NCBI RefSeq assembly: GCF_021869535.1
Contig: NW_026262712.1
Coordinates: 38,874,001 to 38,938,000, forward strand
Direction of reading: 5' to 3'
Source of the DNA: Mytilus californianus
Taxonomy: Eukaryota
DNA: 64,000 nucleotides
Shown one piece after another: positions 8,698-44,189 of this stretch (its first letter is position 1; every line of letters starts with the position of its first letter). The notes under the pieces were generated by a model. That model saw only the letters and a program-made list of their open reading frames with translations. It had not been told where the DNA came from and made no database searches. The position numbers were made by a program, and so were the translations under genes.

Positions 8698-11112
8698 GTA
8701 AGCAATAATAAGTCTGTAGCTCTCAGGCAAATATTACCCTCAATATATATATATAGAGAAAAAGAGCATCACCAAGTTACTCATTGACGTGTCTCAGATC
8801 TGACATAGAGAGCAACAAATCTAATTATGTAGGCTGAAAAGATTATATTGAAGTTAAAACTTTCACCGTGATAATATCGTATAAGTGTCAAATGATATTT
8901 TTACAGAGAAACAACAACAGCCACACAATACAGATACAGATGCGCCAATTGTAGGTATGTGCATATTAAGTGTTTTTGTCGGGTGATAGAAACATCAACT
9001 TTTATTTATTTTAGACAATAAACTCAAAGTTTAACTTTCACTTCAAACCAATGAAATAGAAAAACAAAGGATATGGGGTATCCATCCATGACAAAAAATC
9101 AGTACATGCACAGCAAAAAAAAACAGACAAAAAGCAAAGGAACAGCGCTTTTATTGCTGTTCTTCATCTCAAAATCACAGTGAGGCCTTCAGCACGGAGC
9201 AAAAATACTCTCAATTGCTTTTGGTTCATAGCTATGATTAGATAATAAAAAGAACTGCATGATAGTATATATTTCAATACATTAATGATAATTATTTTAA
9301 AAGAGAAAATCATCCTGAAAATATTGATATAGATATGTGTGATGACCTATAGCATCACTCTGAATGTCAGTTTATTGTCGAGTATTGTTAAGACTTTAAA
9401 TTATTAAAATAATTTTCATACTTGGTCGATTATAGTTATGTTTATCCGAAGGAAACGGAAAATATAGCCGTGTGTACACCACAACCAAAGGAATCTTAAA
9501 TTCCATGAACGTTTATAATTTTCTAAAACATAAAATGCATTAAAAATTTAATTATCTAGTTCCTGGCATGCCTTCATACTTTACCAGGTGCACAGGTTAG
9601 TCAGTACTCAGAATATTTTTTTTACATACATTTTTAACATTTTTATCCATAAAGAAGCTCATTGGTTGATCCTTATGTAAATATAATTCCCCTCTGAACT
9701 TTTTTTATTCATATCTCTGTGTAGATATATCTACCATGTTGTCTTTTGGATAGCTATTATTACTAAACAAGTTAGAGTAGGTGTCAGGTCTTTCCCATAA
9801 TAAGTCTATGTTATTTAGAAGATTTCAAAGTCAATATTTTAAAATGAATAGAACAGAACAGTTTATTGTTGAGACCATAGATCAAACAAGTGACAGGTGT
9901 CTAAGCTTACAATGTTATTCATAATTCAAGTGACTCTGATCAGAGTTATGTTAATATCATAGTCGTTAATAGCGGTTTTCGTTTGATTCAAAAAATATAT
10001 CGTCCTTATTACGAAGATGAAATACTGAATTTAACAATTTGAAGTCAATCCTTTTACGTTTTACCTTTTCAACATAGTTTCTGTTTTTAAACAAATAAGT
10101 ATACTACTTGAATGATGCTAACCATGCTTTAGTAAATATGAAAAGTAAAACATATGAGACATAAAAAAGATAGTTTAATCCTGCTTTTTGTTCTTTTGCA
10201 AAAAATCTTGTTTCATTCCTATGTTTTCAGAACCATGTTTTACGACTTGTGGGATACACTTTGATATGTGGAGATTCGAATTACAAGTTTTATTTTTTTA
10301 AGATCAAAGGATATTATACTTTTGTTTATTGTTTGATTTGAGTTGTGTAACCTTTATTCTTAATTCACATATGATAAGAATGCAATTTCTTACGTTTTGT
10401 AGTTTAACACTTTAACGCAAAACTTGTTTGTACACTAAGATATGTACAACTACAACGCTTTTCATTATTGCAATAGACCATAACTTATGGTATATAATGA
10501 GACCTATGTTTGTCAATAAAAGAGCATACGTTATTACCCATGTATAGTGTTTTCGAAAACATATATTAGTCTTAACTGATCTAAATTTCAGGACAGAAAT
10601 ATTTTCTGAGTAAGTACCTCTATTTTGATTATTCAACGAAACATATAATAAATAAAACTGCTTTCACAGAGGAGACTGTAATGTGTATTATATGACATAT
10701 CTTAGTTACTTATAGAAATCCATCTATCTAATAAATCACCATTATATGAATCCAAATATATTCATATTTTCTGTTAGTGGTAATTACTACTATCACATTC
10801 AACACAAAGATCAGAATTAAAGAGTTTTAAGACCGAGAATAGTTTCAAGGGAAACGGTACATTCATGTAGATTTTTTTGTATAATATACACTTTTTTTCA
10901 TAAGATCAATGAACATAGATAATTAGATTCATTGTTTTATTCATAACATACAAATCTAAGTTATGTGTGCAGTATGTTGTCTAATCGTAGTTGATACTAT
11001 GATATATATTTTTTTTTAGAACAAAGCCTGCATGGTAAGTATTTGAACTTAACAACAGTACTATTTTGTATTAACGGCATGTCATATTATCATAGAACTA
11101 TGAACTTAACAC

Positions 11113-11184
<72 letters not shown>

Positions 11185-14100
11185 GAACAGAGGGAGAGAA
11201 TTAAGGTAGAAAAATATCTGTTAATAAAAAAAAGTTATTTCGTCATTAATTATGTGAAGGCTTAAAATACGTCGCTTGCTAGTCAATTAATACCCGTTCA
11301 ACTGATTTTCAGAGTAGTCAACAGCGGATATATATGTGTTTTTGACAATGCATCATCAATTAAAAATAGCATTTACTGAAAAAAAAAATGATTATACAAG
11401 ATAAGTCTAAATATGGATTGAATTATAGACCGGTTGTCTTAGATCAAACATATATAACTTTACTATTCTGAAGCACATGCATAACTAGTCTTTTTTTTCG
11501 ATGGACAACGGCTAGAGACATCTTATATAGACATAATCAATCAAAGTTTGAGATACAAAACAAAGTAGTCGGGCCCTTTTGTATCTTTAAATATAACGAG
11601 CTTCTTTATAAATTCTGAAATAGACAAGCATTATCAACTTCTAGTAGAGCAGGATCAGCTTACCTTTCCGGAGCAACTGGGATCACCCCCGATTTTTGGT
11701 GGGGTTCGTAATGCCCATTTTTTATTTTGTCATGTTGTGTTTTATGTAATGTTGTTTGTCTTTTCTTTTTTTTTCTTTGTCAGTTTATTTTCGACTTATG
11801 AGCTTGAATGTCCCTTTTGAATCTTGCGCCTCTTTGTTAGATTTTTCTCACAAGAAATTTTAAGCCAACAGTATTTTATAAATGTTCAAATTTTATCAAT
11901 CGATAAAGAAAGTTATGTTTATAATTTCACCATAGATTACGATTAAAAAAAATCAGAATATTTTGCTTAAAATTGATAAAGCTAATAAAAGTATATCTGA
12001 ACATATTATAAAACACAACTTTTCGAAAAACTGCTCATTTGATCTGATGAAGTATAGTTGTTGCATATACCTATTCTCATTAGCAAGAATATTTCATGAA
12101 AACGACATAGCTTGTCTCGATCAAATTAAACAAGTTACATTGTCTAGATCAAATAACAAATTACTGACATTCTTTGTATAAAAAAAAAAAACATCTTGTA
12201 TTCAAAGCGTCCTCATAGATTTACCATCATCAGTATCATTTAAATATAGCACTTGAAACCCAGCGATGCTTAAATACGTAAAAACGTAAGGAGTTATAGA
12301 GAACAACCATAATAGACCAATTCAGCAGTGGTGTCGACTCTGAAAGCCAGATATATATGAATACGTAGAATCGCTAGTAGCTTTGTGACCAAAAGGGACA
12401 TAGCAAAAAGAGCTAAGTTCAGCTAAGGTCAAAATCGCTTGAAACAATTGGAACCTTTGTTTTATAGAAATTTATTAATGTATATGTGTTATTTTAATGC
12501 GACATATTAAGCCAAACGAAAATTTCTTGTTTACCATTATGATAGATACATTTACAATATTACACTCTTAACCTTCAATTGGAGCAGAAAGTTTTACAGC
12601 AGCAAATGACAACAAATTTAAAGACTTTTGAAGGCCGTACGGTGATCTAAAGCTGTTAACTTTTATGACATTTGGTCTGTTGTGGAGAAATGTCTCACTG
12701 GCAATCATACCACATCTTCAACGATTTATGTTTGGGTTTGAGCGTTCAAGAATGAACGATGAAGGTTAATCCACAAAAGCGCTTCGAACGCAAAAATTCA
12801 ATAAAGAGTTATTTTCATCTACTGGCACTAGGTTGATGACACTGCTGGTAGACTGTTATTCCCCGTATTACCGAGAGTATCATCAACTCAGTAGTATGTG
12901 CTTCGGAACTGACTTTTTTTTTCACGAACTTTTCTGAAATTTGCCAATGATAAACTAAAAAAATATTAAGAAACTTAAGTTCAAACTCCCTCCGGAAAAG
13001 TTGATCTTCGATGAGTTTGGCAATTTCTGGTCCATTTACATTGATTTGTTCATAACGATTTGTACGTGTTTGTCTAATATATCAATGGCTTTCAAATGCG
13101 TGATTCAAGTATTCCTGATTCGATGGTATTTTGTTGTTTTCACATTATTTCATTCTTCTTATTTGATTCTTTACCATAGTTACTATATAATAAATATACC
13201 TTTCTTTATAATTATTGCAGCAATTTGTAAGTATAATTTATTTATTTTTCTTTAAACATAAGTTGACTTCAAATTGATTAAGTGCCTAACAATGATAATG
13301 TGTAGTAATCAGAGAAATGATCAGATGTGAGTCAATTTGTTATTACAACTTGGTATTATCTTGATTATAGATACAAAAAAGCATAAAAATCAGCATTTTA
13401 TCGACTTTTGTGTTCTTCAAATAATATCTAAGCTACACTTCATTTGTGATTATTCGGTTAATTGCACCCTTACTGTTAAATGCGTATGTAGGTATGCATT
13501 GTTATTTTAATAAACAACCATTATCTATAAAATATAAACTTTTTACTTCTAATTTAATTGCGAAACATTCGTGATCTACCTGTTTGCCTCATTAAAGCTT
13601 TTTCGAGCACGCCATGGTCATGGGGGTTTCCGTTATAAAACATTGTCTTAGTGTGAACATAACGATACGTAAAGTTTAAACAATTCATCGGAACATAGTC
13701 CTTTATAATTTACTTTACATCCTAAATTCAAAAGTGTTAATATTTGCTGCATATTAATAGATTTTGCTGATATCCTTTTCCCTGAATAGCCCTGGAATAT
13801 TTGCGTTATAAAACGGACTATTGGCTTTTTCCAGCAACTGATACAACAAGATAACATATAGATTGAGGTTGGTACTTGAGGAATGTATTTCCAAACCAAT
13901 CGTACCCCAAACTCATATAGTCTACTTTTCTCATTGTTTGATATACCAAGACAGAAAAGATAACAGTATATGATAATTCTGTTTTGCTTATTTTGTTTTC
14001 ATTCTATGAAAAGGCAATATTTTTTTAATGGTATTTTACCGGTATATATATTTATAAAACTTCATTTTGCACAAATAAACCACATTCATATATATGCGAT

Positions 14101-33895: not shown

Positions 33896-35195
33896 CAGTT
33901 CGGCACTTCTGTGTTAACATGAATTATCATTGATATGGTCAAATTTATAACTTAATAGTTTACAAAACTTTGCATTGTTATAAAAACTACGGATTTTCCA
34001 TTCAGGAATAGATAACCTTAGCTGTATTTGGCAAAACGTTTCAGAATCTTGAGCCTTTTATGGTCTTATGACTTTTTTAATCGACCTTTCGTACACGAAA
34101 CAATGTCTTGTGTACAAAATTACAAGTCTTAGCATGATATCTTTGACTTTGATGCGTTTTTTCCTTTGATATTCAATATTCCTTATTTTTCTTTGACGTG
34201 TGAATATCTGGTTAAATAATTAAACGAATCTTATTTATTTAAATATGTTTAAAGTAATTATAGTCATGATAGTACTGCAATTCAAGAGGAGATATGATTG
34301 ATTGAATGTTGTTTTCTGACCGTCCAGTGGCAAATATTTCATGCATATTTATGACGGAAAGTAATATACTAGTAGTAGAGAATAATATTCAGACAAGAAA
34401 TACAATGTGGCACGCGTTGTCGTTGACCAAGAGCGGCAAGAAGGAGGGGAACATTAAAAATCACAAGACCAATAAATACAAACAACACCATTACCAAAAA
34501 ATTACTCAAGATACACAATAGTGTTGGATAGTTGTGTTTGATCTTTATTACTGTTACACTTACACTTATAATTAAAATTGTCACATGGTGTCTTCTTATG
34601 TCGTATGACTTACACATTTACAATGTATGTTATTATTCACAGTTCGGTAATTTATTTTCGCCATCCGTAATGATTGACTAAAATGTTAACTTGTTATGCC
34701 ATACTTGATAGAAATGCGGACGTGAAAGATAGCACTTTTCACAAAAGCGTCAACGGAGATTAATACATCTGAACAGAGCGACGATTTCGTCATTTATAAA
34801 GCAAAATACGTGTTTCTGAAGGGTAAAGTTGTACTAAAAGTTAATGTTCACACCAATATTGATCTGTTGAGTATAGAATTTATATTTAAAATATGTTTTT
34901 GGTTAGAATACACCATTCCACGGAGATTACATACATAACAATTCTTTGCAGTTTTTACGCTACAAAAGACCTACTTTTGCCTCGATATGCCAATACATAC
35001 AAAGATATCCTATGTTCCTTTCTCGTAGATATAACATTTACGTCATAAAGAAACTAGCCATTATAGTACGAAGAAAAGTGTGTCGTCGGATCTAGTAAAT
35101 ACCGGAAGTCATCTCCGGTCCGCAGTTCGTTTAAATATTTCGATGATTCAATGAAAACTACGACGACTTTTTTCATCTTTTTTTATTTTTAACTA

Positions 35196-35401: not shown

Positions 35402-36485
35402 TATGAGCGTACCTACGGCCCAATAAGATATTTGAATCGCATCAACGTTTATATTCAAGGAATGTCAGGTATAAATATGATATGAGGTACGCTCATAGAT
35501 TAAAAGGCAGGAAAAGGTTTGGCAACTGTCATTTTTTGCCCTTTTCGCGAATCTTGAGGTGTTTACAGCAACAAAGCATGAATAATATCAGCGGAAGTTG
35601 ACGAATCTATTGATGTTTACAAAAATATAGGTTTTAAACTTTTAAAATATATTATTATAATTTATGGCATGTCACTTTTAATTTAAACGAAACATGTGGC
35701 AAAATGAAGGGTATTATGCTAATTTGCATAGCGGCCATTTTGAATTTCTTAGAAATCCGCCATTGTGCTATCATTGTATGGAACAAAAACACTTTATTTG
35801 AAAAAAAATCCAAATCCGTATTTCATACACAATTTGTTCGCATACGGTTTATTTTTATACAACGTCATAAATCTAATTTAGAACAAGTTCTAATTTCACT
35901 TTGCATATCTTTCGGCCAAATGTAATAAAAAATTCGAAGCGAAGCATGCATTAGAATGCATTATCAATTGTTAAAAAATGCTCTATTTGACATTTTTGTA
36001 CACAATTTGCAGATATACAACGCCTGGTGTCATAATTTGTTCGCATATGAGCAGGCAATTTGAAGGTCGTACATTTGAGACAAACTCATTTTATGTGATT
36101 TGAATTTACTGATTTTCGGCCAAATTAAAATAAAAAAGCAACATTTTTAAATTTGGGTTATTTTCCAGGGGGGCCGACACGGGATTTTTTTATTTTTTGA
36201 AAGATTTATTCTCTCAGAATGGAAACCCCTGTGCAATTTATAGAATTTGTAAAGAACGTTTTGTAAGGGCCCAATAAGGGGCATATGTCTGAAACATTTC
36301 AATAGGTCCAATTATTTTTTTATATTTTTCTTGTAATGGTCTTCAACTATACGGTTTGGTTTTGAAATTTTTTAATACTGTACGTTGACTAATATATTTG
36401 GCGCTTTCATCAAGATTGCCTAGTCTCCTGAATAGATTGTCAATGATGATCAAACCACATCTAAAATTGTTTGTATTGGTATCAT

Positions 36486-36515
36486 CAGAGACATATATGT
36501 GTATATATGTCTCTG
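36486..36515. mobile_element. 30-bp perfect hairpin flanked by a 7-bp direct repeat (minimal insertion)
   Basis: gtatcat|CAGAGACATATAT-GTGT-ATATATGTCTCTG|gtatcat. Confidence 0.6.
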
Positions 36516-36613
36516 GTATCATGTTAACTTGAATAAATTGTGTTGTACACTGCCTGACTTGAACAATATTATATATATAATTATATATTTATTCGAAAAA
36601 GTGAACAAAATTT

Positions 36614-36780
36614 AAACATAGAAATATGTAATAAAGGTCAAACATAGAAATCTGTAATAAAGTTCAAACATAGAAACATGATCTGTAATAAAGTTCAAAC
36701 ATAGAAATCTGTAATAAAGTTCAAACATAGAAATCTGTAATAAAGTTCAAATATAGAAATCTGTAATAAAGTTCAAACAT
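36614..36780. repeat. 26-bp minisatellite (AAACATAGAAATCTGTAATAAAGTTC), about 6.3 copies, just 3' of the transposase stop
   Basis: Seen directly. Confidence 0.95.
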
Positions 36781-36843
36781 TAAACATGATAACACATTTA
36801 AACAGTTCCGTCTTTCCTACTTTTTGAACTACTTGTAATACAC

Positions 36844-39173
36844 TTAAGTTTGCACCTGCTTACCACTTTTAACCCAAAATTGATTGTTCATTTTTCTGTA
36901 CTTTCTTTTGATTCGTTCACTTTTTATCATGTAGGATTTGCGGAATCTTACTCGTAAAGATTCAGCTGTTGAGTCATGATTATTTGATTTTCTATGATAA
37001 ATCATCTTAATGTCGTCGTTGCATTTTTCGACCCCTTGTCCTGTAAATTGTTTGATACTTCTGTACTTTCGCAAAAAGAACGAAACATGATATACTAGAA
37101 TATGCATATATGGTGTAACATATTTAAAATCAAAACCTTCAAGACACACTCGTAAAGCCGTAAAGTCTGAAACCCACTTTTGTGCAGAGCCAAAGAATCC
37201 GTCAATTTGTTCGTCGGATGGACTCCATGTATTTATGACAGAGTAAAGAACATAGAAGTCCGCCCATAGCTTACTCAGACTATCTCTTGAATTTTCTGGA
37301 ACACATTCACTTACACGCAGTTTTTTCTGTGAGAAGATGCAGAATCTTTTTAAATTCAGTTCCAGTTGGGCTTGTCCAATCAAGATTCTTAATAGAGTCA
37401 CCCCTCCCATCCTTGACCTTATTCTCTCAAATAGAAAAGGATATACCACAACTTCTTATCAACTCTACTACTTGATCAACCCGCGTACTGCTCTTTGTTC
37501 TTTTTCCTAAATTTTCCTTTTGGTCCATATTGATAGCATTTTCTATCAAGTTTCTCAACAGCAAATCACCAATTCGCATCATTAAATGAAGTTCATCGAC
37601 GACCACATGATCTAGATCTATATACAGCAAAAGCGGATGAATTGAACCGTAATTTGTTGTTTTCTTGTTACATAATTTTATCATTTCTTCAATTGATCTT
37701 TTGAAATTATCGTACCTGTAAAAGTTTTCACTTTTACTCATATCGTATCTATTTTTCTTTTCTATCTTACAATAAAGGCATGCAAAATTTGCATTGGCCG
37801 CATTTAAACCTAGTGAAATCGATAAAAACTTCATATCCCCTCCTAAAAATAAATCTAATAAGTATTATTGACCACTCGAAGACTGATATGGGATATAGCC
37901 AATTTCATTTCTTTTTGCCAAAAGACTGTTAATGTCTTTGAAAATATCTGATAAAGATTCTTGTATTGATATGAAATCTTCTTTTCCATCAACAATAGCG
38001 AGTGTATGTTACCCAGACACTGACATGACTTCCTCGCCGCTGTTCAAAACAGCCAGCGATAAAACCAAAAAGTTTGACATTCGGGACATTTTAGCACCAT
38101 CTGCTGCAAACATTATTTGAATGACAAGTATCTCTACCTCTATATCATGTCTATTAAGAAGTCTATCTATAGTTTCTTTCAACGTGAGTTGAGCACCCGG
38201 ACTTTTACAAGGGGTCTGAGTTATTGTGCACATATCATTGATATCCTGACGACATTGTTTTATCAAGTACGATCTTGGAAGTCCGTTATTGTACACAGCA
38301 AGTTCATGATAAGCATCGTCAGAAACACCAAATTTGTCAAGAACATACAAAAGACTTTTTACCTTATCTTGCTCCGTCTCTGGCATCTGATCATACCTGC
38401 TAACAGGTTTTGTGTTTTTTAAGAGGTCATGCGTAGAACCTGCTGAGTCGACTACCTTTAACTCTTGTAAATCAATCCCAATCGATTTAGCAAACCATAA
38501 AGCCTTGTTTACCCTCTCCTTAAGAATACTAATCTTTTAAGTTGACTGTTTCCTACTTTTACACTCTGGTATTGTCTTACCTTTATTTACTAGAGGGCTT
38601 TGTAGGTTTTCAATGTACTTATTTAAGGCTGTATTTGCCTCTTCATACAACCTCAAATTTTTCTGATAATCATCAGACTTTAATTTGAGAGAGTTTAATT
38701 GTTTTTCTGTTGTCGAATGTTCGGCATTTAACGAGTTCAGCTTGCAATTATACATTTTACGTTCTTCCGCCATTAATTCACTCTTAGAACACATTTCATC
38801 ATAAAACACGTGCAAATGTACATTTTCCAGTGGAAAAGCGTCCCTCCCTCGCCCACCGGTTACACGCCTAGCTTTGAGTTGTGTTCTCCGGACAGCTGAA
38901 AAAAACCTTGATTCAAAAGTAGCGCAGTTTTCTTTAATCGGAAGGACACCATTTTTCAAATTATCATTAATTATGTTTATCGGCGAAATATTTGTCTCAC
39001 TGTAAATGCTGTTTATTTTAAGAACTGTTCCCCTATCTAGAAGGAGTGTGTATCCATGCTTTTTTGTGTGTATCGTTCACTTTTGATGAATTCCCGTTTT
39101 GCGTTTCTGTTGTAGTGTCAATTACTCTTGGTAATGATGTAAAGTTAGTGTTTTTATTAATTTGAAAAGCCAT
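36844..39173 (-). pseudogene. RAG1/Transib-like DDE transposase, decayed (about 770 codons; 4 in-frame stops, 2 frameshifts)
   Basis: Ordered motifs FAADG, GGDMKF..GL.....FACLYC, VVDELHL and YVTPYMHILVYH..FTGQGVEKCND align by eye to RAG1 D600, D708, ZnC2 CxxC, DALH, ZnH2 HxxxxH and E962. Stops at 38537, 38009, ~37866 and 37427; frameshifts at ~39060 and ~37325. Confidence 0.8.
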
Positions 39174-39192
39174 TTTCACTGAAAAGGTTTAT

Positions 39193-40392
39193 TTAAATGA
39201 CAATGTTGACTACTTCCCTCTCTGTTCCGAATTCAATTTTAACAAACTCTTTTGGCCTTTGCTTAGATAAAATTAAAGAACCATTTCCTTGAACTTCAAA
39301 CTGTTTTTTTGACCACCGAAGAATTGGTTTTACATAAACTGGGAACTTGATCCTCTTACCTTTTCCTTGGTTTGAATAAAAAACAACATCCCAGCCATGA
39401 GGGAACAATAAATAATCGAAGTCTGATTTCATATATAAATTATCAGGTTTAGCCTTCAAAATATTTCTGAAAATGTTGTGTTTAATTTCAATATAGAAAT
39501 GCGAGCCAGTTCTTCTATGCAGTCTATCTTGAAATGCAGTCAAAATGTTGTCACTGACGTCTTTTAGTTGAATAGGTGGCAGTGGTTGTGTTGGTTCTCT
39601 GAACTCTTGGATCAGACAGGCAGGTAAATGATCAGCTGGCTCCCACGTGCACTCATATGAAGAAAATCCAACCCATTTCACTAAGTATTCCTCACACTAT
39701 GAACAGAAAAAAAAAAATTCTATTTATTATTTAATGAATAATCTTTGATATTATTAAGTTTTTTATCCTTTAATTTCATAAGATTTGTTGAACAACTTGG
39801 GAAATAACACTATGTACAAGTGTCCATGCACCCCCCCTTTTTTTGTGATAAAAAGAAAAAGACCTTTTCACACACGCACACGCATTCTTTTAAATTTTCA
39901 TTTATTAAGAAAAATCTTATGATGTGTTGTTTTTAAAAGGTATCAATCACAATCGAATTTCAAAATGAATTGGTACAATCCAATTTATTCCCTTTATGGC
40001 GCCTCCTTGTACCGGCAACCCTTCAGAAGCGAGTTGCTTCCCTTTACATTGATAAATCATTGGATTAATTCAATTAATACTTGTAGTTATGAAACATTAC
40101 ATAAACAAGTTTTAGCATTGAATAGTCAGCTAGATGTATGTTGTCTTTTTAATTGCTTTTAAAGTCAAATAGCGAGTTTTTTTAGTCGGACTCACTCAAG
40201 GTCATAATATCAGAACCTGACAGAAAAACATACCCTTTTTAGCTTGCGGCATGCAATGATCCGCTCGACATCATATGTTTCAGGTAAGACTTCTCTCCTT
40301 TCGACTGTCTCTGTCGCTGTACGGTCAGTGCCACTAAAGTTTCCGTCCGCAAGCCGATTGAAATCAATTTTCCTTTTACGTATGTTTGGCAT
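39193..40392 (-). CDS. Two-exon chromodomain protein, 220 aa (exons 40392-40234 and 39696-39193)
   Basis: Donor AGG|gtatgt and acceptor ttctgttcatag|TGT join YDVERIIACRKLKR to CEEYLVKWVGFSSYECTWEP..L, a canonical chromodomain. The spliced ORF is intact to its TAA. Confidence 0.8.
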
Positions 40393-42337
40393 GTGGGTTT
40401 TTTAGTAAATAAAAGGGAGATAACTCGCACAAAGGGGCGGATTTAGCATAGGTCTTGTGATTTAGCTAATAAATAAAGTACCCGCAATTTTGCCGTATGA
40501 ATTGGGGGCTGTTCTCTGATGCTTATGGTACCTTATCCTTTTAGTTCATTTATATGTTTAAGAGTTTAGTGTGACGTCCATTTCGCTCAAATAGTATACA
40601 TTATTGTGAAGGGGGCAATTGAAGTCCTCGGGTTGCGGGATTTTCTCACTGCATTGGAGACGCATTGGTGGTTTTGGGAAGTTTTCTGCCAGTTTTTCGG
40701 CTGGGTTGTTGTCTCTTTGGCAAGTTCCCTGTTTCCATTATGATGATTATTTATTCTATGGAATGGAAAAAGAAAGATAAATCACACTTATTATTACATA
40801 TTTTTTACGAACACATTTGATTTTGCATATGAAATAAACGCAGTTTTACCTAAGTCTAATTGCTGCCTAGGGCAAATAACCGGAGCTTCCCATACAATCT
40901 CAATAGGAGAGCCATATATCAACCCCAAGGGAAAAATCCATATCGGCCCTCATCTTGGTTGGAGAATCATGTAAGTCTTTGAGACTTACTTGATTATAAA
41001 GTAACTCTGCCGTTTAAAAATCTATTTAAACAGCACAGTTTTCAAAGATATTAAAACATCTTTATTATTGATGTGACGTCCTATATTATGACGTTGTTGC
41101 TAGAATCAAAACGTCTTTGTGTTTATTTTCGGAGCACCCCAGATGTGGTTATAGGAATTATTGAGGAATTATTGGATGGTTATAAAATGTTTTATACATA
41201 ATACAAGCATACAAAAAACAACAACAAATAAACAAAGATAAAATAAAATTAAGTAAGAGCAAAGAAAGAAAATAAGTACATATTTTTTATTTATTTTTTT
41301 ATTTTATTTTCTCGTTCCAATTTCATAGACTAGATATGTGATAAATAGGTAATTTCATGATACTGTCCATATCGGCCCTAGTGTCATCCCTTGTCCTATA
41401 TCAGGACTATGTACTTAGCCCTCCGTCCGATATGGGAATATGAGACAGTTGCTAAGGCCATATGGAAAATGCCATGTAAATATCTATAATCATTATATGC
41501 TAATGATACCGTGATATCAAGTGAAATTTTCAAGATCTACAAAAGATGATAGATGATTATTTGAAAATATGGTATTAAAAAATTTGATGAATGATAAAAT
41601 ACTGGTTTAAATTTTTAATACAGATACTGTTATTTTAAAACATGGTTTAAAATCATCATGATCATGTTAGAATCTATTTTTAAAACGCCCTATACTAGAC
41701 TGTACTGGGCTTGCGAAAAATGAGAAATGTTGTATATAATTATCGTATTATAATTGACGTTATCAGGGCACATATCAGGCAGTTGAAATCGAATGCGAGT
41801 TTAAACACTTTTTTTTAAAGAATCATCAACATGAATTTTTTACAAATATATAGACGACTTATATCGTTTACAGTTATATAATATAGAAGGAAAACTCTTC
41901 AATTATGTATTTAAACAATTAATTTGTCAGTATAGAATATGTGCACGTTGTTTGTAGATGGTACAGTTATCATCAGGAGAAAACATTAAAGAACTTTACA
42001 ATTAAGGGAAATATGTGTTATCTGCTATTGCTTTTAAACAGTTGGGTTCCGATATTATTCGATATTCATTAACGTGAATACATGTTTGTGTGAACTGAAA
42101 TGATATGTATAAATCGGTATATATCTATAAACTGTATTGGTTTTCAAATAAAGTATTACTGGGAATGCCATACATGTCCAAAATTAAAACGGAAATTTTC
42201 TTCAAATGTTTGGCTACAAAATATAGACACGAGGTCAGTTGGTCATCCATAATTATCTTTAATTATACATATGTTGCCTTCTTAGTTCTATTCACAGTTA
42301 CTGACGTCCTTCCTGAAAAACTATGATACTCAAGATG

Positions 42338-43064: not shown

Positions 43065-44189
43065 CTATAACACAGAAGTAAAAATTAACTGTTACATATA
43101 TTCACAGAAGGTCAAACTTCAATGTACTATTATTTTCATTATAAAACATTAATATAGATATGATCAATAAGTCAAAATGTTACCATACTTTATTATAAAT
43201 CTATAAATCGATGATGGGGGTCGAAGCTTCTAACAATTTGAAAAGCGAGTCATATTGCTATTAATTTTTGTTTTTATCTCTTATGCCGCCATGTTATAGT
43301 TTAGTGTTTTTTCCTGGACTGTTTTATACATTTTATGTTGGATATTTGTATTTTGTTTATCTTTTTTTTTTGTATTAAAATGGGGTAGATTGAAACGAAC
43401 TAATTTCACCATGTCAGATATGCATGTTCCTAATTCAAGTCAAGGTCTTCGTCAATAGTTGCAGTATGTCTCTATTTAATTCTATCACTATTATAGATTA
43501 TAGATTGGTTCATTGATCGATGGATTGGTGCTTAACGCCACTTTCATCTCTATTGGCTATTTCGTGGCGGTAAGTTTGTATGGGCAGAGGAAGCTGGAAT
43601 GCCCAGAGAGAACCAGCCATCCTTGTCAATTTAGTTGGAAGTCGTGCACACTTGCCACGTGTGGAGATTCGAACAGGCTAGTGAAAAACAAATATTGCAG
43701 ACATGAACCAACGACAACCACTGAACTACAGGCTCCTTTCTTGGGACAGGCACCTAAAGAATGTTGCCGGGTTAAACATTTTTGTGAGCACTCAACCCTC
43801 CCCTAACCTGAGACAGTGGTGTAACAGTACAACATAAGAACAGACTATAAAAAAAAGATTTAAACGGCTTAACTCATCAGATGGCTATATAGAAATACAT
43901 CTAACAAAACACAGAGTGGACATGGACGGGTACTTATACATCCCAAAAACAAAAATACAGTAAGCACAGATCTGAGAGTACTCGCAGTTACGGACAGCTA
44001 ATTCAAACCCAATAACAACTAATGAAAAAAATCATGTATCCAAGAGTATAATATCAATCAGTACACATCCAACATCCGATGGATTTAGTGTAAAGACCTC
44101 ATTAACAGTCAGAAAAAAAACATGACATTGTGCAAGCCTAAACTGTAGGTATCGACAGAGTGTAGTACCGTGAAAGTACATATGTGCAG

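Follow-up and report, generated by a model that had tools for sequence, protein, structure and literature searches.

We analyzed a 64,000-nucleotide (nt) stretch of the Mytilus californianus genome (NCBI RefSeq assembly GCF_021869535.1, contig NW_026262712.1, positions 38,874,001 to 38,938,000 of the forward strand; hereafter, the window, numbered from its first letter), an AT-rich eukaryotic region without N. Its minus strand carries a transposon copy in which a spliced chromodomain gene (ORF1) is followed by a pseudogene of a DDE transposase (ORF2) that is homologous to the RAG1 core. A first-pass annotation, made from the letters alone, had proposed that a RAG1/Transib-like transposase is paired here with a chromodomain gene instead of RAG2.

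Structure of the two genes

Six open pieces on the minus strand cover positions 40392 to 36844. The genes and motifs found there are as follows (aa, amino acids).

40234–40392, minus strand: ORF1 exon 1 (MPNIRKRK...KLKR), comprising an N-terminal tail with a RKRKIDFNRLADG motif, the first chromodomain strand and the cage Tyr (TYDVE); it matches residues 1–53 of gene model P0030.
39697–40233, minus strand: ORF1 intron of 537 nt (GT..AG), which splits the chromodomain (donor AGG/GTATGT; acceptor a T-run, then CATAG/TGTGAG).
39193–39696, minus strand: ORF1 exon 2 (CEEYLVKW...NIVI, stop), comprising the remaining chromodomain with the cage W and F (VKWVGF) and a C-terminal domain of ~130 aa (Pfam Chromo, E 2.9e-07).
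36844–39173, minus strand: ORF2, a RAG1-core-like DDE transposase pseudogene, from frame analysis and from RAG1 fold and profile matches.
38084–38110, minus strand: first catalytic Asp motif FAADGAKMS (D and G invariant in alignments A1, A3 and A4).
37766–37843, minus strand: second catalytic Asp, GGDMKFL (37843–37823), and C(2)C zinc motif, CLYCK (37780–37766; both Cys invariant in A1, A3 and A4).
37012–37110, minus strand: H(4)H zinc motif, YMHILVYH (37110–37087; both His invariant), and catalytic Glu, QGVEKCNDD (37038–37012).
37427–38539, minus strand: span of four in-frame ORF2 stops (38539–38537, 38011–38009, 37867–37865 and 37429–37427), from tblastn against the intact ORF2 of locus L025 and from translation.

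The spliced ORF1 encodes 219 aa in the same layout as the Mytilus edulis gene model P0030, which matches positions 1–52 of the 53 positions in the Pfam Chromo profile (E 1.3e-14, 54 bits, cut-off 25.1 bits); exon 2 alone lies above that cut-off in every lineage tested. The aromatic cage of the window copy consists of the Y of TYDVE, the W of VKW and the F of VGF, and the spliced chromodomain ORF with these residues is thus present on the minus strand as first described. The predicted ORF1 structure (predicted local distance difference test [pLDDT] 69) superposes on the methyl-lysine-bound chromodomains of HP1, Polycomb and Chp1 (Z 7.2–7.3; root-mean-square deviation [rmsd] 1.4–1.9 Å), including HP1 bound to H3K9me3 (Z 7.3). 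With a full Pfam match and a three-residue cage, ORF1 contains a canonical HP1/Polycomb-type chromodomain. The two cage positions encoded by exon 2 (W and F/Y) hold aromatic residues in the window and at loci L025, L028, L030, L071, L072, L073 and L075; the exon-1 Tyr could be read only in the window, L030 and L071, and is present in these three. Lineage L030 (34% identity) and Tubulanus (L071) retain exon 1 as well as the position of the intron. Downstream of the chromodomain, the ~130-residue C-terminal domain is predicted to be alpha/beta, and its tail is conserved as protein up to the stop in lineages of 22–42% identity and in other phyla. The annotations of Mytilus coruscus and M. edulis label ORF1 copies (P0014, P0030 and P0031) ‘CBX3’ or ‘Chromo domain-containing protein’, and these models look like transposon genes taken for host genes.

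ORF2 begins with an ATG (MAFQINK) at 39173, 19 nt past the ORF1 stop, and has a PIKEN motif in its N-terminal part, as do the full-length homologues P0002 and P0003. The D, D, CxxC, HxxxxH and E residues show little or no variation in A1, A3 and A4 and align to RAG1 residues. In profile searches, the segment with the second Asp and the C(2)C motif aligns to GYDEK and CTLC of RAG1 and RAG1L, and the H(4)H and Glu segments align to YLHKTLAHV and EGNES of RAG1. The full catalytic and zinc motif set, first described downstream of the chromodomain ORF on the same strand, was found in its entirety. Despite this complete set, the window ORF2 is a pseudogene, with at least two frameshifts (near 39060 and 37315) in addition to its four stops. 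Open relatives exist in the same genome: a core ORF of 676 aa at L022 and, at L025 (of a lineage 53% identical), an intact ORF2 of 787 aa next to an ORF1 exon 2 that is likewise intact. In a lineage whose transposases start with MSD... (P0008, P0010 and P0013), the protein ends in a SAP-like DNA-binding motif that the window lineage lacks; Pfam SAP matches occur in 1 of 16 members (E 1.3e-4) and in 2 of 46 members (E 7.5e-4) of the two homologue sets.

Several features indicate that ORF1 and ORF2 are two separate genes and not a fusion. ORF2 has its own start, which reads MSD... in five lineages (L025, L029, L030, P0006 and P0010/P0013) and MAFQ... in the window family, and the gap between the two genes is 19–100 nt across lineages. 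Standalone ORF1 gene models of 219 aa and 193 aa exist, and none of 46 transposase proteins contains a Chromo domain. We also considered a single gene, in which the chromodomain exons form the 5' part of the transposase gene and are spliced into a fusion such as the M. coruscus model P0014 (383 aa, Chromo), where ...YSNQGK is joined to transposase ...ALNNYIENLQ. The window does offer a GGTAAG donor at 39359 and an in-phase acceptor (T-run, CAG) at ~38896. However, this splice would remove ORF1 residues 108–162, in exon 2, together with ~90 residues from the beginning of ORF2. Both stretches are conserved as protein at 22–42% identity and in other phyla, and the points at which ORF1 stops and ORF2 starts are conserved as well. 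A fusion is further at odds with the standalone models, with the transposases that lack Chromo and with three loci at which ORF1 lies on the opposite strand (see below), and we regard it as improbable. The junction 39359 to ~38896 and the P0014 model were accordingly rejected, because the segments removed are conserved coding sequence; P0014 itself probably reflects an error of annotation or else a minor isoform.

RAG1-core homology and lineage of the transposase

Single-sequence searches of Pfam and the Protein Data Bank (PDB) gave no convincing match for the ORF2 pieces of the window or for the L022 and L029 ORFs. An AlphaFold model of the transposase, based on 16 homologues (pLDDT 83.8), matched the RAG1 core in Foldseek at E 2.6e-14 over ~585 columns (TM 0.54–0.67), HzTransib at E 7.5e-12 and the amphioxus RAG1L (BbRAG1L) at E 2.4e-10. 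At the sequence level, a 46-sequence family profile reached RAG1 (E 4.2e-11) and RAG1L (E 2.2e-10), with the second Asp, CxxC, HxxxxH and Glu aligned. The whole-core fold match together with the sequence-profile match therefore establishes RAG1-core homology: ORF2 is a true homologue of the RAG1 core, with similarity that spans the whole core and not the RNase H domain alone.

The motifs say less about the lineage. The D-D-E, C(2)C and H(3-4)H motifs are common to the whole EnSpm/Mirage/Chapaev/Transib (CMCT) clade, which includes RAG1 (PMC12730594), and therefore do not place the element with RAG/Transib in particular. Target-site duplications (TSDs) in the CMCT clade are 2–5 bp long (PMC12730594); the element has the motif set and the CA..TG termini of the clade, and a TSD of 1 bp. 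Within the clade, the predicted shape is about equally near (TM ~0.6) to clusters that carry DUF1280, RAG1 domains and Transposase_21, whereas DUF1280 clusters rank first (0.96) by language-model features. Majorek et al. equated DUF1280 with Chapaev and clustered it with RAG1 (PMC3985635). DUF1280 is present in 16–51% of the members of the nearest Atlas clusters, and Pfam DUF1280 matches were obtained for 1 of 16 close members (E 0.0028) and 1 of 46 members (E 3.2e-07). The DUF1280 model had 0 matches in the genome, a result of little weight since the control was likewise silent in all 14 reference genomes. Pfam RAG1 (PF12940) gave no match above its cut-off for the L022 or L029 proteins, and its weak matches (1 of 16 and 3 of 46 members) have a best E of 2.7e-04.

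The N-terminus was compared with that of Chapaev. In the intact ORF2 of L025, the N-terminal ~200 residues contain four scattered Cys and no CxxC/HxxH clusters, and no N-terminal ‘Chapa’ zinc finger or RING was found in this protein by inspection. For L022, a close homologue of L025, the model predicts a long coiled coil at the N-terminus. On these grounds we assign ORF2 to the CMCT clade, nearest to its Chapaev and RAG1 side, in a lineage without a current family model. The transposase is neither a canonical Transib nor RAGL. The label ‘RAG1/Transib-like’ of the first-pass annotation thus holds insofar as ORF2 is a RAG1-core homologue by fold and profile, and fails for the Transib/RAGL hallmarks (TSD, ends and Pfam RAG1). 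Clustered at 50% identity, the family numbers 9895 clusters with a threshold of E ≤ 1e-3 and 936 with one of E ≤ 1e-30. Because it is large and has no Pfam model, its members have likely been entered in the annotations of invertebrate genomes as host genes, under names such as ‘CBX3’ or ‘chromo domain-containing’.

Linkage of the two genes and limits of the element

At 15 transposase loci in this genome, an ORF1 homologue lies within ~2 kb upstream on the same strand. The linked lineages include one in which ORF2 is 34% and ORF1 25% identical to those of the window (ORF1 identities range from 25–40%), and the diverged lineages retain the same split chromodomain and the same place of the stop, with the ORF2 start 52–100 nt further on. 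ORF1 is inside the terminal inverted repeats (TIRs) in all five full-length copies. Close protein matches to the window genes are found among the gene models of M. coruscus (87%) and M. edulis (82%), and the arrangement with ORF1 upstream recurs in Pinctada imbricata (E 3e-42), Tubulanus polymorphus (E 1e-33, both exons found) and Ptychodera flava (with an extra intron). A convergent arrangement, with ORF1 downstream on the opposite strand, is present at three loci from two other sources (L070, L072 and L073). The chromodomain gene is therefore a conserved partner of this transposase in molluscs, a nemertean and a hemichordate, in two gene arrangements. Linkage that survives both deep divergence and rearrangement argues for a functional requirement and for two genes.

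These comparisons also bear on what the first-pass annotation had asked of other copies and genomes, namely whether the linkage is lost: it was not at the 15 loci or in Pinctada, Tubulanus and Ptychodera. Its proposal of a chromodomain partner in place of RAG2 agrees with the gene content, as the element contains no RAG2-like gene and, besides the two genes, only ORFs of ≤73 aa. At L070 (GCA_949826985.1, 9644–11572), two ORF1-like genes stand head to head (10355–9644 on the minus strand and 10976–11572 on the plus strand) beside the transposase P0013, which suggests adjacent or nested copies.

DNA transposons are known to capture host fragments, and the M. coruscus annotators named one copy CBX3, so that ORF1 could be a passenger, either a captured host fragment or a neighbouring gene, without a role in transposition. 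We find this hardly credible given that ORF1 lies within the TIRs of five full-length copies and is linked to the transposase at 15 diverged loci here and in at least three other phyla. Furthermore, the same non-host C-terminal domain is always present, the frame is kept at 22–42% identity and the linkage has outlived a change of orientation.

The limits of the element were determined from other copies and from an empty site, and the corresponding features are as follows.

35693–40499, minus strand: whole transposon copy of 4807 bp, delimited by the end of similarity to other full-length copies and by the empty site.
40477–40499, minus strand: 5' TIR of 23 nt, CATACGGCAAAATTGCGGGTACT, with an identical start in 6 of 6 copies read at the 5' end, whose flanks differ.
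35693–35715, minus strand: 3' TIR, ending ...TTTTGCCACATG, with an end point common to five autonomous copies and a ~720-bp family of miniature inverted-repeat transposable elements (MITEs).
40500, no strand: 5' copy of the 1-bp TSD (A on the plus strand), from flank comparison and the empty site.
35692, no strand: 3' copy of the 1-bp TSD, from flank comparison and the empty site.
35716–36843, minus strand: 3' non-coding part, with short tandem repeats at ~36604–36800 and only ORFs of ≤73 aa, common to other full-length copies.

Four other full-length copies (93–95% identity) diverge from the window exactly at 35693 and 40499 and have unrelated flanks, and a fifth, internally rearranged copy loses similarity at the same two points. 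The span first proposed, 36844–40392, covers both genes but falls short of the whole element. The TIRs are imperfect, with 17 of 23 positions of the 5' end matching the reverse complement of the 3' end, and the termini are of CA..TG type (start CATACGG, finish CCACATG). In 21 of 22 copies, the single nucleotides that adjoin the 5' and 3' ends of the element are identical (17 of 18 when the other autonomous copies are excluded; 7–9 of 18 in offset controls), and no duplicate longer than 1 bp was found at the element ends. A contig of run X2 joins window position 35691 directly to 40500 with one ambiguous base, skipping 4808 nt and carrying a single A, and loose read ends in three runs of the same study pass directly between the two flanks. 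The presence of this empty locus in public runs means that the site exists unoccupied in other animals and that insertion duplicated one base. The copy alignment called for in the first-pass annotation to define TIR and TSD has thus yielded 23-nt imperfect TIRs and a 1-bp TSD. A longer TSD hidden in CATATG ends was ruled out: the autonomous ends differ from each other (CATACG and CACATG), are constant among copies and are missing from the empty site. In the L025/L026 subfamily, the 3' end was mapped to ...TTTCTGGATATG.

The last 50 nt of the element (35693–35742) are found at >200 places in the genome, and a first look yielded 208 candidates for the ~720-bp MITE family (L045–L069, on many contigs of the genome). 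The MITEs have the ends CATATGGCAAAAT...ATTTTGCCATATG (i.e., CATATGG..CCATATG), with the 3' terminus ...TTTTGCCATATG. On both sides, the subterminal sequences of the MITEs are similar to those at the 5' and 3' ends of the autonomous element, and the MITEs are flanked by the same 1-bp duplication. These ~720-bp elements are non-autonomous derivatives of the two-gene transposon, whose ends they share.

Other repeats occur in and around the element. Downstream of the transposase stop (36604–36800, minus strand), ~6–7 tandem copies of a ~30-nt unit (TTTGAACTTTATTACAGATTTCTATG...) are possibly candidate subterminal binding sites. In one copy (L023, G000:C154:59041000-59050999), similarity to the window is interrupted between L023 positions 3680 and 5478, where ~1.8 kb of unrelated DNA replaces ~100 nt of the ORF1 intron. 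Outside the element, 43512–43991 and 34295–34356 are 73–89% similar to stretches in the unrelated loci L021, L026, L027 and L029; these are other interspersed repeats that flank the element.

Role of the chromodomain protein and comparison with known systems

Considering all of these results jointly, the locus is a decayed copy of a two-gene cut-and-paste transposon whose ORF2 is a RAG1-core transposase gene, and we think it likely that ORF1 acts as a chromatin-reading accessory subunit. ORF2 would bind the TIRs, probably as a dimer because of its N-terminal coiled coil, excise the element by the nick-and-hairpin chemistry of RAG/Transib and reinsert it with a 1-nt stagger. ORF1 would be an element-encoded accessory subunit that uses its aromatic cage to recognize a methylated lysine on a histone (to judge by similarity, a mark of the type of H3K9me3 or H3K27me3), and its C-terminal domain may contact the transposase or the transposon ends. 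In this way ORF1 could couple transposition to chromatin state, steering insertion or licensing cleavage. Such a role would be functionally parallel to that of the RAG2 PHD finger or of chromoviral integrase chromodomains, with an independent origin. Chromatin targeting or a RAG2-like role is plausible for the putative reader.

Several results are to be set against this interpretation. All five close copies carry at least one ORF2 frameshift, and the subfamily may therefore be extinct in this assembly. The 1-bp TSD, measured in one subfamily only, falls outside the 2–5 bp reported for the CMCT clade, and at the convergent loci ORF1 may lie outside the TIR-bounded unit of the transposase. The third cage position is a Cys in L074 and in one L070 copy. 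The C-terminal domain of ORF1 has no trustworthy fold match in the PDB (Foldseek and a wide structure search) or the Atlas, the best being R3H-like (Z 4.6). A complex prediction with the L025 ORF2 (787 aa) and ORF1 exon 2 (164 aa) scored 0.03, which speaks neither for nor against binding. The RNA run X10 (~6% read) has no reads on the coding region and hence gives no splice information; runs X1–X3 look like low-depth DNA contigs.

The missing third aromatic in some copies also belongs to a different account of ORF1, as a DNA/RNA-binding or silencing-related accessory, or as a decoy that disturbs HP1-type silencing, in which the chromodomain serves protein or nucleic-acid contacts and not methyl-lysine reading. 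Helper DNA binders are known from the two-protein systems PIF/Harbinger (Myb-like) and En/Spm (TnpA), and the C-terminal domain weakly matches small nucleic-acid-binding folds (R3H, Z 4.6; KhpB and Smr, Z 3.4–3.6). However, these structural matches are below any trustworthy level, and nearly every lineage read has aromatic residues at the two exon-2 cage positions (with the exon-1 Tyr read in the window, L030 and L071 only). In addition, the domain superposes on methyl-lysine-bound HP1, Polycomb and Chp1 at an rmsd of 1.4–1.9 Å. We therefore consider this account unlikely, and a chromatin-reading subunit remains the preferred interpretation of ORF1.

RAG1 assembles antibody genes, and the PHD finger of RAG2 binds H3K4me3, which couples a Transib-type nuclease to a histone reader. 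How and why this coupling arose bears on the origin of V(D)J recombination, and the element would provide a second, independent pairing of a RAG1 core with a reader. Should ORF1 prove necessary for transposition, the family would be a natural comparison system in which to ask whether such readers control cleavage or guide integration in these enzymes; the 1-bp TSD, were it to hold throughout the lineage, could serve to recognize it. A broader proposal is that, on more than one occasion, transposases of the RAG1 supergroup acquired a reader of histone methyl-lysine as an obligatory second subunit, and that the chromodomain protein does the work of RAG2 in a sister lineage that is large, ancient and unannotated and has a unique 1-bp stagger. 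We hold this to be doubtful at present. If true, chromatin-mark-gated DNA cleavage would be a recurrent and possibly ancestral property of this enzyme family, and not an innovation of vertebrate immunity.

A chromodomain gene paired with a RAG1-core transposase as a separate protein was not found described in the literature searched. Full-text searches returned no description of Transib, Chapaev or RAG1 paired with a chromodomain, although earlier curation in Repbase or Dfam is possible, and no chromodomain partner is reported for Chapaev in this literature. RAGL proper exists separately in bivalves (PMC7204232), and the study of bivalve RAGL makes no mention of a chromodomain pairing.

Compared to Transib (including HzTransib) and the RAG1 core, the element shares the overall core fold, the order of the D-D-E, C2C and H4H motifs and a profile match to RAG1. 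It differs from Transib in its TSD (1 bp, versus 5 bp) and in its ends, which are CATACGG/CATGTGG and not heptamer-like CACNGTG, with only the leading CA in common. The sequence profile does not reach HzTransib at E ≤ 0.01, and the transposase lacks a Pfam RAG1 match above the cut-off. Moreover, the transposase has an N-terminal coiled coil, and the element carries a gene in addition to the transposase, which is the only protein encoded by canonical Transib (PMC4411706).

The resemblance to ProtoRAG/RAGL is in organization: a RAG1-core transposase is accompanied by a second gene with a histone methyl-lysine reader module (reading is assigned here by similarity), and the genes are convergent, as in some lineages of the present family. 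The ProtoRAG/RAGL partner, however, is a Kelch propeller with a PHD finger, in contrast to the ~219-aa chromodomain protein described here, and the partner genes of the two groups show no sign of common descent. The genes of the window lineage are in tandem, 19 nt apart, the TIRs differ and the TSD is 5 bp in ProtoRAG versus 1 bp here. Chapaev and Chapaev3 (DUF1280) share the CA..TG termini, and clusters that carry DUF1280 are the nearest unsolved relatives by language-model features and predicted shape. Chapaev nonetheless has an N-terminal ‘Chapa’ zinc finger with or without a RING (PMC4411706) in place of the coiled coil, and Chapaev3 has a 3-bp TSD, TWA (PMC3014272), in place of 1 bp.

Other elements combine similar parts in different ways. 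PIF/Harbinger with its Myb-like protein and En/Spm with TnpA and TnpD likewise encode a transposase and a small accessory protein in one element, but those accessories are sequence-specific DNA binders, whereas ORF1 consists of a histone-reader domain and an uncharacterised C-terminal domain. Chromoviral Ty3/Gypsy, Maverick/Polinton and Ginger/GingerRoot elements carry their own chromodomain, with a plausible link between integration and chromatin. In these, the domain and a retroviral-type integrase make up one protein, with the domain joined at the C-terminal end, whereas in the present family it is part of a separate protein encoded beside a RAG1-type transposase.

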